A program made the translations under genes and the position numbers. This document shows positions 4,197 to 38,497 of a stretch of 64,000 nucleotides of DNA, in pieces. The notes under the pieces were generated by a model that searched no databases, was not told the origin of the DNA, and saw only the letters and a program-made list of their open reading frames with translations. Location: positions 1 through 64,000 of IMG/VR virus record IMGVR_UViG_3300005529_000001; one strand, written 5' to 3'. Every line of letters begins with the position of its first letter. Position 1 is the first letter of the stretch.

Positions 4197-4586
4197 TCAG
4201 AGCAGCGGTAAGTGTCCGGTGATCTTGTCGAGCTCTTCGACCTTGCACGGGCCGAAAGCAGCGCAGGTCAGGGTGGGGACACCATGGAACTCTGTCTTAC
4301 CGGCATCGATGATCGGGTGGACTTCGATGTCAGCTAGCTCTGCTCTGAAGATGAGGTCACGCAGTTCCTCTTCGCTGCCACAGCGGACGACAGCCTTGGT
4401 GAACGACCCGGACAGGAGCCACTGAGCCTCTTCAAGCGAGAGCTTGACAACGATCTCATCGCCACGCTCGCTTTCGTTGTTGTCAACGAGGAACTTCATT
4501 GCGGCGTGAGCACCTTGGGCGATCATCTTGCCCTTACGCATGTTCAGATCGGTGCGTACAACGATGACTTGCTTCACGTCGCTCAT
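4197..4586 (-). CDS. pth2: peptidyl-tRNA hydrolase, Pth2 type
   Basis: KQVIVVRTDLNMRKGKMIAQGAHA...DAGKTEF...T...GP...ITGHLPLL. Confidence 0.92.
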   Translation of the reverse strand: MSDVKQVIVVRTDLNMRKGKMIAQGAHAAMKFLVDNNESERGDEIVVKLSLEEAQWLLSGSFTKAVVRCGSEEELRDLIFRAELADIEVHPIIDAGKTEFHGVPTLTCAAFGPCKVEELDKITGHLPLL

Positions 4587-4627
4587 AGCTACCTCCAGGT
4601 TTTCAAAGAACGCCACGTCCGAAGACG

Positions 4628-4702
4628 TGGTGACCCGTGTTGGATTCGAACCAACGACCACCTGCTTGTCGAGCAGGTGCGCTACCGCTGCGCCAACGGG
4701 CC
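4628..4702 (-). tRNA. trnV: tRNA-Val(GAC)
   Basis: CCTGC-TCGACAA-GCAGG (C33). Confidence 0.9.
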
Positions 4703-4751
4703 TTGAAGAAGGTGTGTCCAGGTTCATGGTACACCTTCAAGTAAGTATCGA

Positions 4752-7312: not shown

Positions 7313-7982
7313 CGTCTCCGAGATCAAAGTCTCTGATGTCCGCGGGAGGGTCGGGAGCTGGGGTTGCTGATGGTCCACCTTCGTTGATGCTTCGTTTGAT
7401 GGCAGCGATGAGTTCTTCGGTTTGTCGTTGTTGCTCACGTTCGTCCTCCGGGATGATGTGATTGATCGCGTAATAGAAGAGTGAACTGAAACCGGGAGCG
7501 TACTCTTCGAGCTCCGCTTCGAAGTAATTGCAACGCTTCAGAGCAGCTGCGGCTTCACGTGGGTTGCCCAAGTCAAACCTGACCAATGCAGGTTGGCATC
7601 GCTTGATAACTCGCCAGTATGCCGCGGCAGCATCATCAAACGCGTAAAACGCGCGGTACCAGTGCTTGTCACCCTTGTTGAAGTAGGTGGGTTGGTCTAC
7701 AGATGTCGGCCCAACGTTGCCCAAGTTGTGGTTGTATGATGCTCGCCCAGCTGCGTTCTCAAACGCTACCTGACCCCAGGCCATCGCAAGACGGTTCTTG
7801 CTGGGGTAGCTGCCAAAAACTTTCAGGTGACCGTCACGCAACGCTTGCAGCAGCTCCAGTTGAGTTAGTGGCGTCTTCACCGTTTCTACGTGTTCTCGCT
7901 TGGGTGGCTCCGCTTGTGCAGATCCGAGAGTGCAGCTGAACACAACAGTGATCAACGCGAAGAGCTTCTTCGCCCGGGACAT
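7305..7982 (-). CDS. secreted glucosaminidase/lysozyme-like (GH73-like) protein
   Basis: signal peptide; QVAFEN...NHNLGNV...YRAF...Y pattern. Confidence 0.5.
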   Translation of the reverse strand: MSRAKKLFALITVVFSCTLGSAQAEPPKREHVETVKTPLTQLELLQALRDGHLKVFGSYPSKNRLAMAWGQVAFENAAGRASYNHNLGNVGPTSVDQPTYFNKGDKHWYRAFYAFDDAAAAYWRVIKRCQPALVRFDLGNPREAAAALKRCNYFEAELEEYAPGFSSLFYYAINHIIPEDEREQQRQTEELIAAIKRSINEGGPSATPAPDPPADIRDFDLGDGD

Positions 7983-7999
7983 TGACTCAATCTACTAAG

Positions 8000-8928: not shown

Positions 8929-9519
8929 TCACTCCCAGTCACCATTGTACCACCTAGACAGCCTGCTTTTCACGCCCGTTCGGTGATCAGTGACCTGGTC
9001 ATCTTGGGTGCGATACGTGCGAACCTTGTCGCCACGTTGGCCCGTGCCAACTTGCTGTTTACGATCAGTTTCTTTGGCGGTTCGTAATCGCTCTCTGTCA
9101 GCTTCATAGAGTCGAGCTGCAAGGACTTTCATCGCCATCGCTTTGTTTTGGCTTTGGCTTCGTTCATTGTCGATACGAACTTGTAACCCAGTCAACTTGT
9201 GAGTGACAACAACGCAGCTCTCGGTCTTGTTACGTTTCTGGCCACCCGGACCAGATCCGCGGACAGTCTCGATGAGAACGTCCTGGTACGTCAGGGGTTG
9301 GCCACTGACAAAATCAGGATCAAAGACAGCAACGGTTACCGTTGACGTCTGGACCCGACCACGTTTTTCAGTGGGTGGGATCCGTTGCCACCGGTGACCG
9401 CCGCTCTCGTTACAGAACGTCTGTTTGGCTCCTGCACCAGTGAAAGCGGCGATGACCAAACCTGGACGTTCGTCGATTAGTTCGATTTCAAAGACACCTC
9501 CGTGCTGCCACATTGGCAT
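8929..9519 (-). CDS. peptide chain release factor-like protein (RF1-type, N-terminally truncated)
   Basis: ESGGHRWQRIPPTEKRGRVQTST (PxT), GPGGQKRNKT (GGQ), RSQSQNK, RTY. Confidence 0.9.
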   Translation of the reverse strand: MPMWQHGGVFEIELIDERPGLVIAAFTGAGAKQTFCNESGGHRWQRIPPTEKRGRVQTSTVTVAVFDPDFVSGQPLTYQDVLIETVRGSGPGGQKRNKTESCVVVTHKLTGLQVRIDNERSQSQNKAMAMKVLAARLYEADRERLRTAKETDRKQQVGTGQRGDKVRTYRTQDDQVTDHRTGVKSRLSRWYNGDWE

Positions 9520-9566: not shown

Positions 9567-10073
9567 TCAGCGGCTCTGATCTCGAGGATGACCGTCTCCA
9601 TTGTCTGTCTCCCCAGCGACCGCTCCGAAGTGCTCGTCCAGGATCATCCTGTAGACACGCCGGTTGAGACCGCTGTGTTGTTTGAAAAACTCGTTATCGT
9701 CTCCCGCGAAGATCTTGAGCAATGCGCTCGCGACGCCGGGAGACCTGCTCAGGCCTGCATCACAGTGAATGATGATCCGGCTTGCGATGGGGTGAGCCGC
9801 AACAAAAGCGAGGATCGCTTTCGCGTGGTGCGGCTGGAACATCAATCGCTCGACGTCTTCTCTGACAACACGTTCAGGTTGTGTTCCACCAACCCGAGTG
9901 TCCCAGACACGATCGATGTCGTAGAACTGGAGCTGCAAGACGCCCAAGGTGTTGCTGTTGGTCGGGAGCCTAGCGGGTCCGTCTTCTTTGGGGGTGCTGA
10001 TTGAGATGAAAACGTGCGGAACCTTGTGTTCCACGGTCTCTGCAAGCTGTCTGTTATAAACGATGACGTCCAT
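9567..10073 (-). CDS. Cys-based (tyrosine/dual-specificity) phosphatase-like protein
   Basis: HCDAGLSRS CX5R loop; FYDID acid loop. Confidence 0.8.
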   Translation of the reverse strand: MDVIVYNRQLAETVEHKVPHVFISISTPKEDGPARLPTNSNTLGVLQLQFYDIDRVWDTRVGGTQPERVVREDVERLMFQPHHAKAILAFVAAHPIASRIIIHCDAGLSRSPGVASALLKIFAGDDNEFFKQHSGLNRRVYRMILDEHFGAVAGETDNGDGHPRDQSR

Positions 10074-11472: not shown

Positions 11473-11522
11473 GTTGGGGGTGAATCCGGTTACCTCACCC
11501 AGGGGTATTGCTACGCCGGTTG

Positions 11523-11876
11523 TTACACGTCCACGGCAATTTTCATGGCCTTGCCTCGAGCCAGCTGGAGCTTGTTGATGAAGACTAGCATGTTGACCAC
11601 ACCGATGTCGCCCATGGGCCAGCGCACCATCTCGTTCTGTAGCTTCTCTGATAGCTCTTCGCTCAAGCCGGTGTCGGCTCTGTTCCCGTCAACGACGACC
11701 GCGACGTCAATGTCGCTGTCAGCGCGGAAGAAATTCTTGTCGATGACGCTGCCCACGATGTAGACTTCCCGGCATGGGAGACCCAACACATCAGCCGCTG
11801 TGTTCCTGATGAAGCCGGCATTCTGCTTCAGGATCTCGATCGCTTCTTGCCGGTACTCTTCGAGTTCAGGGTCCAT
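11523..11876 (-). CDS. minimal nucleotidyltransferase (Pol beta superfamily)
   Basis: VYIVGSV...DSDIDVAVVV (GS...DxD). Confidence 0.8.
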   Translation of the reverse strand: MDPELEEYRQEAIEILKQNAGFIRNTAADVLGLPCREVYIVGSVIDKNFFRADSDIDVAVVVDGNRADTGLSEELSEKLQNEMVRWPMGDIGVVNMLVFINKLQLARGKAMKIAVDV

Positions 11877-29927: not shown

Positions 29928-31136
29928 CTACTTCTTGGCCCCCTTGTCCTTGGCGGGTGCCTTGAAGATGCCGGGGATGTTCGGGATGATCCCGATCCCT
30001 GCCTCACCCATCGGGACGCCGAAGACATCGAGGATGTCCTTGGCACAGTACTTGTGGATGCTCTTGGCGAGCCCGATCTTGTCGATGCCGTGAGCTGTCA
30101 GCTTCGACCACAGCGAGATACGGTGCTCTTCGCCCAGCTCCCGCATGATGGCGGTGATGTTCTTGCCCTGCTGCTCGCTCAGCGTCTCCACGTTCTTGAA
30201 GACGTGGTCGCTGACCTTCTCGATGAGACCGTTGCGCTTCTCGTGCGACTGCTTGTCGAACTTGGCTTTGACTGAAGCGGTGTGGAAACGGTCGACCAGG
30301 TCCTCACCCGTTAGGTTGGTGTCGATGTTCTTGCAGTAGTCTCGGAACGCCGACGCTGCGTCGTTGCCGACGAAGACTCGGACGATGTTCCAGAAGCGGG
30401 GGTCGAGTGGCTTCTCGCTGAGTCCCGCAGCAACCAGCGACTCGTTGACAAACTCCCAACCGCGAGGGGATGGCTGCTGGGTGTTCGGGTCAGCGCCCTT
30501 GGCCGGGTACAGCCAGATGTCTCGCTGCTCGACGAAGTCCGGGATGAAGTAGTGGAGGTTACCACCCTGCTCGGGGTCAGTGTTCCGTGCCCAGCTGCAA
30601 AACTCGGCGGGGGTGACCATCAGGTCCACGACCGCCAGTCGTGACAGCAGCGCCGGATCGATCTCGTTGACCTGGTACTGGGCGCCGGTGTTGATCGCGG
30701 CGTAGACCCTCGACAACGGGTGAAGCTTGTGACCGTTGAGCTCGTGGTCCAGGACGATCTGGAACGAAGCTTGCATGACCTCGGTCGTGCCTCGGTTCAG
30801 CTCGTCGAGGAAGATGACGTGAGGCTCGTCACACGCCATCATGTACCAGTCAGGCGGGTTGAACCTGGTGACGCGGCCGTCGGTGCTGGGCAAGCCGATC
30901 AGGTCGCCCTCACTCATCTGGCCGAGGCGGCGGTCAATGACCTGGTAACCGCCCTCCTTGATGAGGCCTTGCTCGAGGAGCTGCTTGCGGATGATAGCGC
31001 TGACCTGCCTGACAGACTGGCTCTTGCCCCTGCCGTGGTCTGCGCGGAGAAGCACTGACCGTCTGGCGGGCAGCAAGGCTGCCGTCTCCTTGAAGGTCGT
31101 CATTGACATCGTCGTCTCGGAACCGGTGCTTGCCAT
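29928..31136 (-). CDS. MoxR-like AAA+ ATPase
   Basis: Walker A DHGRGKS, Walker B IFLDELNR, AAIN, DPALLSR, SPRGWE. Confidence 0.88.
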   Translation of the reverse strand: MASTGSETTMSMTTFKETAALLPARRSVLLRADHGRGKSQSVRQVSAIIRKQLLEQGLIKEGGYQVIDRRLGQMSEGDLIGLPSTDGRVTRFNPPDWYMMACDEPHVIFLDELNRGTTEVMQASFQIVLDHELNGHKLHPLSRVYAAINTGAQYQVNEIDPALLSRLAVVDLMVTPAEFCSWARNTDPEQGGNLHYFIPDFVEQRDIWLYPAKGADPNTQQPSPRGWEFVNESLVAAGLSEKPLDPRFWNIVRVFVGNDAASAFRDYCKNIDTNLTGEDLVDRFHTASVKAKFDKQSHEKRNGLIEKVSDHVFKNVETLSEQQGKNITAIMRELGEEHRISLWSKLTAHGIDKIGLAKSIHKYCAKDILDVFGVPMGEAGIGIIPNIPGIFKAPAKDKGAKK

Positions 31137-33358: not shown

Positions 33359-34174
33359 TCACGTGAGCCCCTTTCCGGATGCAACCCGTTTGACCTCATC
33401 CTCGGTGATGGGGTATGACTGCGAATCGGTCTGGTCTTCGACAAGACCGAACCGGAGCCTGAGGATCGCTGCTTCCTTCGCTGACAGCTCACAGATGACG
33501 CTCTTGACGATCTCGAGGAGTTGCTTCTCAGCAACGTTCTCGAAAGGATCGCAGCCTGGGCGGTCATCCTCGACCTTGTCCTCGATGGTGTCGCCCTCGC
33601 CGTTGGCACTGAGCGGTTGCTGGAGCGAGATGGTGCCACGGCCCGAGTGGATCGTTGCCTTGACAACAGTCTCGCTCGCGCCGATGATCTCCATCAGCTC
33701 CTCAGTCGTCGGCTCGGCCCCGTTCAGCTCGCGGTACTCTTCCGCAGCTTGCAACAGCTTGCGTTGCACCGTGACTGCATGAGCGGGAAGGCGGATGATC
33801 CGCTTGCGCTTCAGCACGTGCTGGCCGATGGCCTGCTTGATCCACCACGTTGCATAAGTCGAGAAGCGGAAACCTCGCTTCCAATCAAAGCGCTCGACTG
33901 CCTTCATCAGGCCGATGTTGCCCTCCTGCAAGAGGTCTTCCAGCGGGACCTGGCTGTTCTTGTACAGCTTGGCGATGGAGACAACCAGGCGCAGGTTGCA
34001 CTCAATGATCCGCTTGCGAGCCTTGTCAGAAGCGCCCTTGTCTTCGCCCTCAAACGTCTTGAAGAGCTCGACCACCTCTGGGTGTTTCAGCTGCGGGAAC
34101 GCGTGAAGCGCGTCCAGGTATGCGCCGACAACGTTCGTGTCGACGCCCTTTTCTTGGGTCTGCATCAGTTCCAC
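33359..34174 (-). CDS. RNA polymerase sigma-70 family factor
   Basis: NLRLVVSIAK, DLLQEGNIGLMKAVERFDWKRGFRFSTYATWWIKQAI, region 3-4 ILRLRFGL. Confidence 0.95.
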   Translation of the reverse strand: MELMQTQEKGVDTNVVGAYLDALHAFPQLKHPEVVELFKTFEGEDKGASDKARKRIIECNLRLVVSIAKLYKNSQVPLEDLLQEGNIGLMKAVERFDWKRGFRFSTYATWWIKQAIGQHVLKRKRIIRLPAHAVTVQRKLLQAAEEYRELNGAEPTTEELMEIIGASETVVKATIHSGRGTISLQQPLSANGEGDTIEDKVEDDRPGCDPFENVAEKQLLEIVKSVICELSAKEAAILRLRFGLVEDQTDSQSYPITEDEVKRVASGKGLT

Positions 34175-35713: not shown

Positions 35714-35785
35714 TGGTTGCTCCGACTGGACTCGAACCAGTGGCCCCCGCTCCATGGTAACGGGTGTCCGCCGATATGCGGAGCA
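35714..35785 (-). tRNA. atypical tRNA-like RNA, reduced D arm, CAT centred in loop
   Basis: 7-bp acceptor plus ACCA, canonical T arm, CCCGTT-ACCATGG-AGCGGG. Confidence 0.55.
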
Positions 35786-35787
35786 AT

Positions 35788-35883
35788 GCGTCATGTCGAA
35801 CGGAATCGAACCGTTGCCCGGGTAGCAGCCGCGAGCCTTCACAGGATTCTGTGTTTTTCCCAGTGCTTTCCTCGAACGACATG
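35788..35883 (-). ncRNA. tRNA-like RNA with 4-nt anticodon loop
   Basis: CATGTCG/CGACATG acceptor, CACAG-AATC-CTGTG, T arm AACGG-TTCGATT-CCGTT. Confidence 0.55.
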
Positions 35884-35886
35884 ACT

Positions 35887-35961
35887 TGGCAGGGGCGCAG
35901 GGACTCGAACCCTGGTAGCGAGTTTTGGAGGCTCGCGTCCTAGCCGCTGAACGACACCCCT
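35887..35961 (-). tRNA. trnW: tRNA-Trp(CCA)
   Basis: loop CTCCAAA, G73, C.A mismatch at 31-39. Confidence 0.85.
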
Positions 35962-36652: not shown

Positions 36653-36654
36653 AG

Positions 36655-36727
36655 TGGAGCACGCGGGACTCGAACCCGCCACCTCAACGTTGCGAACGTT
36701 GCGCTCTCCCAGATGAGCTAGTGCCCC
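36655..36727 (-). tRNA. trnA: tRNA-Ala(CGC)
   Basis: CAACG-TTCGCAA-CGTTG. Confidence 0.92.
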
Positions 36728-36780: not shown

Positions 36781-36856
36781 TGGCAGCGGGGGATGGAGTT
36801 GGACCACCATTTCCAAGCCTTAGACGCCTGGCGACTTGCTGTTAGTCGACCCCGCT
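36781..36856 (-). tRNA. atypical tRNA with CUA (amber) anticodon, 6-bp anticodon stem
   Basis: CCAGGC-GTCTAAG-GCTTGG; G73-CCA; D loop lacks GG; T loop TCCAACT. Confidence 0.55.
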
Positions 36857-36857
36857 G

Positions 36858-36930
36858 TGGAGCTAGCGGGATTCGAACCCGCCACCTTCTGCATGCCATG
36901 CAGACGCTCTCCCAAATGAGCTATAGCCCC
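36858..36930 (-). tRNA. trnA: tRNA-Ala(GGC)
   Basis: TCTGC-ATGGCAT-GCAGA. Confidence 0.92.
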
Positions 36931-37529: not shown

Positions 37530-37636
37530 CATCGTTCACCTGCCAGGATTCGAACCTCCATGTCCGGCTTGAAAGGCCAGCATCCTACCATTAGATGACG
37601 AGACCTTGCGATCTCGGGGTAAGTGGTTACTTGATG
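37530..37636 (-). ncRNA. AGUA/GAA module copy L carrying a tRNA-Glu(TTC)-like body without 3' acceptor strand
   Basis: CAUC-A-AGUA-ACC...GGU-GAA-C-GAUG; CTGGC-CTTTCAA-GCCGG; GGTTCGAATCC; GCAA hairpin. Confidence 0.75.
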
Positions 37637-37709: not shown

Positions 37710-37781
37710 TGGTGGAAAGGGCTGGACTCGTCCAGCACTTCCGGGTCAAGAACCCGGCGCTCTGCATTGAGCTACCTCTCC
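37710..37781 (-). tRNA. trnK: tRNA-Lys(CTT), 6-nt T loop
   Basis: CCGGG-TTCTTGA-CCCGG; GCTGG-ACGAGT-CCAGC. Confidence 0.6.
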
Positions 37782-37883: not shown

Positions 37884-37956
37884 CCTCTCTGTCCGGACTC
37901 GAACCGGAAGTCTCTACCTTCGCAGGGTAGCATGTTTTCCATTACACCACAGAGAG
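37884..37956 (-). tRNA. trnR: tRNA-Arg(GCG)
   Basis: CTACC-CTGCGAA-GGTAG; CTCTCTG/CAGAGAG acceptor. Confidence 0.75.
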
Positions 37957-38370
37957 ATAATCGTTGAAATATTTGATGCCCTTTCGCTGGCCGTTCTTGG
38001 GTGGATCAAATCGAAGTGAGAAGCTTGTTGTGTGACCCTCGATCTCACTCATCGACACATATGCTACGACCTTTCGATCGATGACATACAGTGCCATGTA
38101 GTCGATGTTTCGTGTTGTATATCGCAACCCGCTGCGACGGTTCGTGAAGTGTGACAGGCAGACCGTCCCTTTCTTGGATGATTTCACTGTCTTCGCTTGA
38201 AGTTTGACAACTTGATTTTCTTTCACAGCGATGATGTCAATGTGACTGACGTCGCCATAGGGAAAGAAGACATCGTAACCTTGGTTCACTAGATCACTTG
38301 CAATTGCAAGTTCTCCTACGTTGCCTGTTGCTTTGGTGACCGACAGCATGATGCTATCGTAACGTGTCAT
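37942..38370 (-). CDS. PD-(D/E)XK endonuclease
   Basis: GELAIASDL...PYGD...DIIA...KLQAKT; Y...IDYMALY. Confidence 0.82.
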   Translation of the reverse strand: MTRYDSIMLSVTKATGNVGELAIASDLVNQGYDVFFPYGDVSHIDIIAVKENQVVKLQAKTVKSSKKGTVCLSHFTNRRSGLRYTTRNIDYMALYVIDRKVVAYVSMSEIEGHTTSFSLRFDPPKNGQRKGIKYFNDYLSVV

Positions 38371-38374
38371 CGTT

Positions 38375-38497
38375 GGACGTTCACATTCACGCTTCACTGG
38401 CGTCCCTGCACCGTGCATCTAGGGGAATGTACGCGCCGAAACGCAGTCCCCCAGGTGGGAATTGAACCCACTCAAGTTTGAGCAGTTACTTGTCACG
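38375..38497 (-). ncRNA. AGUA/GAA module copy N (ACUG/CAGU) carrying a circularly permuted tRNA-like domain
   Basis: order: T-arm GTGGG-TTCAATT-CCCAC, closed 7-bp acceptor CTGGGGG/CCCCTAG, short D-like hairpin. Confidence 0.65.

Follow-up and report, generated by a model that had tools for sequence, protein, structure and literature searches.

Amber-reading tRNAs are known from several systems that resemble the gene analyzed here, a tRNA-like gene with the anticodon CUA (the CUA tRNA) in the window, the first 64 kb (64,000 nucleotides) of an uncultured phage record. The pyrrolysine tRNA, tRNA-Pyl, is distinguished by a 6-bp anticodon stem, a 3-nt variable loop, one linker base between the acceptor and D stems, a 5-nt D loop, the G1-C72 pair, and G73 (PMC1851642). 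The CUA tRNA is similar in its anticodon, in a 6-bp anticodon stem that opens with a C-G pair, in G73, and in lacking G18G19 and T54-Psi55-C56 (PMC1851642), but differs in its 4-nt variable loop, two linker bases, 7-nt D loop, and A1-U72 pair. The E. coli suppressor su+7 (supU) offers another likeness: one change at anticodon position 35 of a Trp-type tRNA turned CCA into CUA, and U35 makes su+7 a substrate of GlnRS. A tRNA-Trp-derived amber suppressor is charged with glutamine (PMC9976931). G73, A1-U72, G2-C71, and G10 are common to su+7 and the CUA tRNA. However, su+7 arose in the laboratory by mutation of a canonical chromosomal tRNA. The CUA tRNA occurs naturally in a phage; its anticodon helix is extended, its D and T loops are degenerate, it has C3-G70, G32, and G38, and its charging is a prediction.

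Phages provide three further comparisons. The Xanthomonas jumbo phage XacN1 has a pair of tRNA-Sup(CUA) genes in a big tRNA array, and its genome is likewise not recoded. In silico read-through of 18 TAG stops in XacN1 gave no targets (PMC5852040), which matches our result for the window phage. The XacN1 tRNAs differ in being canonical (GG D loop, UUCGA T loop, anticodon loop CUCUAAA, A73) and are unrelated in sequence; the covariance model that we built for the CUA tRNA family scored them at 30 bits, the level of any tRNA. Phage tRNAs that evade host anticodon nucleases are also extra copies whose loop flanks, positions 32 and 38, differ from those of the canonical copy (PMC10264068), but they keep a sense anticodon, whereas here the anticodon became a stop reader. 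Lak megaphages and crAss-like phages encode CUA suppressor tRNAs as well; many in-frame TAGs occur there, in contrast to none detectable here and 91% coverage under the standard code. The CUA tRNA is a structurally new variant of something already known, an amber-anticodon tRNA in an unrecoded jumbo phage, and such tRNAs in unrecoded phages are still unexplained.

The record is 369,475 bp long with direct terminal repeats, has an estimated completeness of 100%, and is the same contig as the JGI metagenome record Ga0070741_10000068. The virus is a jumbo phage of soil type with a GC content of 56%; its proteins include a T4-type major head protein, a tail sheath, and a family B DNA polymerase. 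Its head protein reaches a best identity of just 30–50% among GenBank phages, and hundreds of uncultured viral contigs are related to the phage via this protein. A megablast search against GenBank phages found no close relative, and matches in a distant blastn search were confined to the Ala tRNAs. ARAGORN detected 58 tRNA genes and a tmRNA in the whole genome; 55 of these tRNAs lie inside the window, in two arrays on the minus strand. The tmRNA (genome 265088–265457, minus strand) has the tag ANDNGFADDVRLAA, and the tmRNAs of relatives have similar tags.

Two further matches of the Rfam tRNA model in the window were missed by ARAGORN, so the true tRNA count there exceeds 55. One is a 58-bit tRNA at 37713–37781 (minus strand) with the loop UUCUUGA, the anticodon CUU, and a 6-nt T loop; the other is a weak 27-bit tRNA-like stretch at 37535–37601 (minus strand). 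A 94-nt element at 35714–35807 (minus strand) is reported by ARAGORN as tRNA-??? with an "anticodon" of 2 bases. It ends in ACCA and its T arm is normal, but its acceptor is mismatched at the top and it contains a long insert. Its identity to positions 7901–7992 of the related contig L098, in the same slot, is 93%, and informative covariation was not found. The second tRNA array also contains a PD-(D/E)XK endonuclease gene (37942–38418, minus strand), and a sigma-70-family factor (33359–34174, minus strand) lies just downstream of this array. A scan of the tRNA array for promoters and terminators found none above shuffled expectation. The 0-nt spacer between tRNA-Ala(GGC) and the CUA tRNA implies that the two are co-transcribed. 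The features of the locus and the stop-anticodon tRNAs of related genomes are listed in Table 1.

Table 1. Features of the CUA tRNA and its neighborhood (window positions) and of the stop-anticodon locus in the phage (G000) and related genomes.
Feature	Position	Strand	Description
tRNA-Ala(GGC)	36857–36930	-	Directly upstream of the CUA tRNA, 0-nt spacer; same junction in L098
CUA tRNA, whole tRNA-like gene	36781–36856	-	76 nt, anticodon CUA, encoded CCA end; ARAGORN, fold, covariation, own covariance model
D loop	36837–36843	-	AACAGCA, without G18G19; the single G may serve as G19; read from sequence and ARAGORN
Anticodon stem, 5' strand	36826–36831	-	CCAGGC (6 bp); fold, covariation, pair probabilities
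Anticodon loop	36819–36825	-	GUCUAAG, 7 nt; U33 and A37 normal, G32 and G38 unusual; 3 of 7 positions differ from AUCCAAC in L098
Anticodon	36821–36823	-	CUA (TAG on the plus strand); CCA at the same place in orthologues
Anticodon stem, 3' strand	36813–36818	-	GCUUGG (6 bp, one G-U); fold, covariation, pair probabilities
Variable region	36809–36812	-	AAAU, 4 nt; sequence and fold
T loop	36797–36803	-	UCCAACU; C replaces U at 55, with U54, C56, and A58 kept; compared with the genome's other tRNAs
Discriminator	36784	-	G73; conserved in 3 of 3 family members
tRNA-Ala(CGC)	36654–36727	-	53 nt downstream of the CUA tRNA; 100% identical to its L098 orthologue; syntenic slot marker
Canonical tRNA-Trp(CCA)	35887–35961	-	A1-U72, G73, loop CUCCAAA
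G000, two tandem tRNAs	genome 336639–336712 and 336718–336792 (= L015:12639–12792), outside the window	+	8-nt loop AUUUCAAC (U33-UCA-A37 with one extra 5' base)
G002, two tRNAs	PTH2-like/HD_4 locus		8-nt UCA-type loops ACUUCAAA and ACUUCAAG
G009, one tRNA	PTH2-like/HD_4 locus		8-nt UCA-type loop ACUUCAAA
G001, two CUA tRNAs	PTH2-like/HD_4 locus		Loops CUCUAAA and UUCUAAC
G003, one UUA tRNA	PTH2-like/HD_4 locus		Loop CUUUAAA

The initial annotation, made from the letters alone, had described a tRNA-like gene with an amber anticodon, and this was borne out by an ARAGORN call at exactly the same positions and strand, by a cloverleaf fold, and by covariation. ARAGORN names the gene tRNA-Pyl, anticodon CUA. 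This name arises because its anticodon table lists CTA as Pyl whatever the tRNA, and it should not be taken as evidence of pyrrolysine. The Rfam tRNA model (RF00005, gathering threshold 29 bits) left the CUA tRNA unmatched even at E ≤ 10 when a 121-nt stretch was searched. In the 4-kb neighborhood the same model found 19 tRNAs, 18 of them above threshold, and the CUA tRNA was not among them.

The acceptor stem, AGCGGGG/CCCCGCU, is followed by U8 and C9; one G separates the D stem (GACU/AGUC) from the anticodon stem, and the T stem is GGUGG/CCAUC. Each structural element listed earlier from the letters is present, namely the 6-bp stem CCAGGC/GCTTGG, the loop GU-CUA-AG, and G73-CCA, as are the D loop without GG and the non-UUC T loop. 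The minimum free energy and centroid folds are both this cloverleaf, at −31.3 kcal/mol (z = −2.88, with 1 of 200 shuffles as good), and each pair of the 6-bp anticodon stem has a probability above 0.98. Almost all other tRNAs of the genome have a GG D loop and a UUCGA- or UUCAA-type T loop, and the CUA tRNA is the odd one out. Tertiary pairing is retained at U8-A14, A15-U48, G53-C61, and U54-A58, and probably also at G19-C56. The molecule can equally well be drawn with a normal 5-bp anticodon stem and a normal variable loop of 5 nt; C26 and G44 then form a Watson-Crick pair, and a single additional G follows the D stem. Its departure from a standard tRNA is therefore smaller than "Pyl-like" suggests.

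To find orthologues, 80 syntenic loci from related phages were fetched via the sigma-factor gene, 1.4 kb from the array, and scanned for tRNAs. The closest relative, L098 (IMGVR_UViG_3300035696_000017), has a sigma factor 82% identical to that of the window and shares the gene order Val(GAC), Ala(GGC), x, Ala(CGC), Ala(UGC), Asp, Asp, Trp. Its gene at x (L098:6585–6659) is 75 nt long, abuts Ala(GGC) without a spacer, and has the anticodon CCA, a 6-bp anticodon stem, a 4-nt variable region, a D loop without GG, the T loop CUCAAAC, G73, and a CCA end. A covariance model built from the window and L098 copies was used to search the related loci, and a third member was found in a slot between Tyr and Asn (L105:4606–4677). 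This member has the 6-bp stem, the loop AUCCAAC with the anticodon CCA, a 4-nt variable region, and G73, together with normal D (GGG) and T (UUCGA) loops. The model gives 98 bits for the window copy and 95.3 and 64.7 bits for the L098 and L105 orthologues, respectively, and at most 50 bits for ordinary tRNAs. G73, the extended 6-bp anticodon helix, and the 4-nt variable region are traits of all three members.

The covariance model did not find the family in five near-complete relatives, and the same slot in L101 and L115 contains spacer alone. Pattern scans, both exact and degenerate, covered IMG/VR, JGI metagenomes, and 185,579 prokaryote genomes; every match was an identical copy of one of the three types, and none lay in a bacterial genome. 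These patterns were strict and may miss divergent members. By overall sequence, the tRNAs nearest to the family are the phages' Gln, Met, and Trp types, and the acceptor stem and G73 of the L098 copy are identical to those of tRNA-Gln(CUG) genes on other viral contigs. We interpret the family as a small one that evolves fast and is made up of second-copy Trp-type tRNAs in one sub-lineage of environmental jumbo phages.

Other unusual tRNA-like genes were observed during these searches. Tyr/Asn-slot genes in several phages (L115:3792, L111:1803, L108:5199, and L105:4606) keep a UCCCGGG-type acceptor and G73, and their anticodon loops are entirely different, some with 6 or 8 nt. Loops of these two lengths also occur in many more tRNA-like genes around the Lys tRNAs of related phages. 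An unrelated viral contig, L188 (IMGVR_UViG_3300035517_000267), carries another CUA tRNA at 11519–11592 (minus strand) with the loop CUCUAAA; its acceptor positions 2–7 are the same as in the window tRNA, and it has a U-C mismatch at 1:72, G73, and the T loop GUCAGUA.

Covariation in the three-way alignment supports the structure. All 22 pairs are kept, 66 of 66 pair cells are standard, and 8 pairs changed on both sides; none of 500 shuffles reached any of the five measures used, and slid registers were only 34–56% paired. The C-G pairs at the two ends of the 6-bp stem are invariant in all three members, which neither supports nor contradicts them, so covariation speaks for just the four middle pairs. 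The CUA tRNA and its L098 orthologue are identical in 52 of 76 columns, compared with 93% and 100% identity for the flanking Ala tRNAs and 90% for the canonical tRNA-Trp. Six stem pairs differ between the two copies; none has lost its pairing, and in four of them both bases changed. Such fast sequence change under strict constraint on shape is not the behavior of a pseudogene. As judged from this alignment, the CUA tRNA is a genuine, structurally constrained, and selected RNA.

The CUA state was found in one genome only. Both orthologues read CCA in the loop AUCCAAC, and the L098 copy does so in the identical slot between Ala(GGC) and Ala(CGC), with the same 0-nt junction, so CUA is derived by a change of C35 to U. 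The simplest reading of the sequences is that CCA was ancestral and that C35 to U, A32 to G, and C38 to G arose in this phage. All three family-bearing phages also have a canonical tRNA-Trp (A1-U72, G73, loop CUCCAAA); the odd copy is thus redundant for decoding UGG and free to change. By its anticodon the CUA tRNA is not a tRNA-Trp, though it descends from a Trp type, and its G73 and A1-U72 follow the pattern of most canonical Trp tRNAs in the clade (the orthologues have U1-A72). That the CUA tRNA is a real tRNA derived from a CCA form is very probable.

Most likely, the CUA tRNA suppresses amber codons weakly after host enzymes have charged it with Gln and/or Trp. It would be transcribed with the neighboring tRNAs and cut out of the transcript by RNase P, and a host synthetase, likeliest GlnRS and/or TrpRS, would charge it. 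Once charged, it would compete weakly with release factor 1 at UAG. With no recoding of phage genes, an effect, if any, would consist of read-through at a low level, affecting the roughly 9% of phage genes, and the host genes, that end in TAG. The change would be either adaptive or tolerated in a redundant copy. We put the probability of this whole explanation, including actual suppression of UAG, slightly above even, at roughly 0.55.

The identity of the charging enzyme is suggested by known recognition elements. GlnRS recognizes U35, the discriminator, and the 1-72, 3-70, and 10-25 pairs, and bacterial TrpRS recognizes G73, the anticodon, and the first pair (PMC9976931). For GlnRS, the CUA tRNA has U35, C34, a weak 1:72 pair, G2-C71, G10-C25, and G73; the mismatches are A36 and C3-G70, as against the G3-C70 preferred by E. 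coli GlnRS. For TrpRS it has G73, A1-U72, C34, and A36, and C35 is lost. Our best guess for the inserted residue is Gln and/or Trp. A search of the phage found neither a class Ic (Trp/Tyr) nor a class Ib (Glu/Gln) synthetase.

Features expected of an amber suppressor are present in the form of a cloverleaf with CUA, U33, a purine at 37, and an intact acceptor end, whereas phage genes needing read-through of UAG were not found. An active suppressor would be favored by the encoded CCA, U33, A37, the kept tertiary pairs, and selection on all four stems. Against it, decoding tRNAs rarely have G at positions 32 and 38. The signal for the i6A37 modification, on which amber suppressors rely, is A36-A37-A38, and modification of this type strengthens the reading of codons that start with U. 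As A38 is absent from the CUA tRNA, the modification may not be made, and as U55 and G18 are missing, the elbow may be weak. An RF1-like protein of the phage, with PxT and GGQ motifs, would also oppose suppression of UAG. The missing match to the Rfam tRNA model and the occurrence of CUA in a single genome count against an active suppressor as well.

The genetic code of the phage was evaluated over the whole genome. TAG stops at 29928, 25356, and 16332 had been cited as a sign that the genome is not wholesale recoded; all three are real, and this view is upheld by a greedy set of open reading frames, which covers 91% of the genome under the standard code and gains nothing when TAG is read as sense. 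Frames of at least 150 amino acids end in TGA (212), TAG (31), or TAA (22), and a set of 452 genes scored by codon usage ends in TGA (369), TAA (42), or TAG (41), giving shares of about 80% for TGA and about 9–12% for TAG. Past TAG, the reading frame continues for a median of 14 codons, with a mean score of −0.11 per codon, and these extensions are neither longer nor more coding-like than those past TAA or TGA. Four long TAG extensions with positive scores have their own ATG 3–7 codons after the TAG, with a purine-rich stretch before three of the four, and so are simply the next gene. Stops with 50 coding-like codons on both flanks number 2 for TAG, 3 for TAA, and 11 for TGA genome-wide, and both of the TAGs have an ATG three codons downstream.

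Wholesale or partial recoding of TAG was rejected on the standard-code coverage, the unremarkable TAG extensions, and the count of two flanked TAGs. Neither a recoded gene nor visible programmed read-through was found genome-wide by this method, the reach of which does not extend to short C-terminal extensions. The initial annotation had inferred conditional read-through and pointed to extensions past TAG stops as the place to look for it; the genome yielded no in-frame TAG and no coding extension, and conditional read-through stays purely inferential. Avoidance of TAG in CUA-bearing genomes was considered and dropped: the TAG share is 13% and 10% in two CUA-bearing genomes (G000 and G001), 18.5% in G002, and 9–11% in three genomes without CUA, and these shares are uninformative and confounded by GC content.

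An alternative is that the CUA tRNA is a tRNA-like RNA that does not decode. Its body would be kept for binding, for example as a decoy or resistant substitute against host tRNA nucleases, and its triplet would be incidental and free to drift. In line with this, the anticodon loop is the fastest-changing part, three of its seven positions differing from L098 as the stems co-vary, and positions 32 and 38 are atypical. Related phages have many tRNA-like genes with 6- or 8-nt loops, and in the slot between Tyr and Asn a constant body bears wholly different loops (CCA in L105, others at L115:3792, L111:1803, and L108:5199). Phage tRNAs with altered anticodon loops are also known to escape anticodon nucleases (PMC10264068). 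However, U33, A37, the 7-nt loop, G73, and the encoded CCA are kept, as expected of a charged decoding tRNA, two of the three members have the sense anticodon CCA, and no nuclease or partner was identified. We consider a non-decoding role unlikely.

Quite improbable is an inactive or decaying duplicate, in which the CUA anticodon and the degenerate D and T loops would be damage without function. The lack of an Rfam tRNA score, the loss of G18 and U55, the redundancy with the canonical tRNA-Trp, and the absence of the gene from the five near-complete relatives and from the slot gaps of L101 and L115 would all fit with decay. Decay would not, however, leave all six stem pairs altered relative to L098 able to form, four of them after substitution of both partners; the fold is also stable, and nothing of the acceptor end, G73, or CCA has been lost.

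A pyrrolysine-type (pylT-like) tRNA charged by a PylRS of the host or phage, the lead first raised for this gene, did not hold up and is now a very remote prospect. In addition to the shared features given above, G10-C25 and A11-U24 are as in D. hafniense tRNA-Pyl. Nevertheless, four of six structural hallmarks of tRNA-Pyl fail, as does the identity pair G1:C72. The 6-bp anticodon stem is present, but CUA is not conserved, both orthologues having CCA; the variable loop has 4 nt in all three members, not 3; the linker has two bases, U8 and C9, not one; and the D loop has 7 nt in the window and 6 nt in the orthologues, not 5. The linker and variable region had been noted from the start as departures from tRNA-Pyl, and the lengths of 2 and 4 nt were confirmed. 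An alternative 5-bp D stem with a C9-G pair is not kept in L098, which has G9. Position 73 is G as in tRNA-Pyl, but where that tRNA has the major identity pair G1-C72, the window copy has A-U and the orthologues have U-A; A11-U24 is not conserved. G18G19 and T54-Psi55-C56 are missing from the window and L098 copies, but this is not a family trait, as the L105 type has GGG and UUCGA. A search for pylS had also been proposed; the profile of the PylS C-terminal domain (TIGR02367) found no PylS-like frame in the complete 369-kb phage, and it detected class II relatives in 13 of 14 control genomes. Structure, the 1:72 identity pair, the orthologue anticodons, and the absence of pylS from the phage led us to reject this reading, and the "Pyl" of ARAGORN is only a name for a CUA anticodon. 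An Asp-derived tRNA with an expanded 9-nt loop, also raised initially because the string GUCUA occurs in the loops of both tRNA-Asp genes, has practically no chance and was rejected, as the orthologue loop AUCCAAC has no GUC, no U precedes GUC to act as U33, the C-G pair that closes the loop has a predicted probability above 0.99 in all three members, and the tRNAs closest in sequence are of Gln, Met, and Trp type, not Asp.

The suppressor reading, in which a redundant Trp-type tRNA became a weak reader of UAG, can be set beside other stop-anticodon tRNAs in the clade. These were surveyed by whole-genome tRNA scans of five large relatives and a synteny check. A conserved locus has the order PTH2-like, tRNA-binding domain (PF01588), HD_4, one or two tRNAs, PD-(D/E)XK nuclease (PDDEXK_1), and glycosyltransferase (GT1), and the tRNAs there match a stop codon in all of the genomes in Table 1. 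The main stop is TGA in all of these genomes. This suggests that stop-reading tRNAs are tolerated or useful in the clade, and their recurrence modestly raises the chance that the CUA tRNA of the window is no accident.

Several genes related to translation were observed in the phage. An RF1-like protein of 196 amino acids (window 8929–9519, minus strand) is truncated, lacking domain 1, and keeps a codon-reading motif of PxT type (PPT) and GGQ. Its best profile score is to RF1 (180 bits), above RF2 and PrfH, and it is also encoded by the L098 phage and four other viral contigs. Co-adaptation of this gene to the CUA tRNA was rejected, because the L098 phage has it together with the CCA form. Adjoining it, at 9567–10073 (minus strand), is a weak, sub-threshold match to the Rit1 DUSP-like domain of an initiator-tRNA phosphoribosyl transferase (E = 8.5e-4, 20 bits against a cut-off of 22). 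One PTH2-type peptidyl-tRNA hydrolase gene lies inside the first tRNA array (window 4197–4727, minus strand), and a second (genome 334594–335232, plus strand) lies beside the pair of stop-anticodon tRNAs.

A broader proposal is that the clade deliberately keeps stop-reading tRNAs despite its standard code and that the phage, with the truncated RF1-like factor, two PTH2 genes, and the tmRNA, manipulates translation termination in infection, the odd CUA tRNA being an adaptive part of this system. We regard this as possible but speculative. If it were true, the purpose might be timed read-through, sabotage of host termination, or counter-defense. The pattern of stop-anticodon tRNAs beside termination and rescue genes in the clade is worth a study of its own.

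In summary, the origin of this amber-anticodon tRNA can be read directly, as a redundant, oddly built Trp-type tRNA that was one base away from CUA. With its extended anticodon helix and weak elbow, the family may appeal to tRNA engineers as a natural scaffold. Together, the CUA and CCA forms in the same slot provide a natural before-and-after pair for studying what benefit a stop-codon reader brings to a phage and how the phage comes by it.
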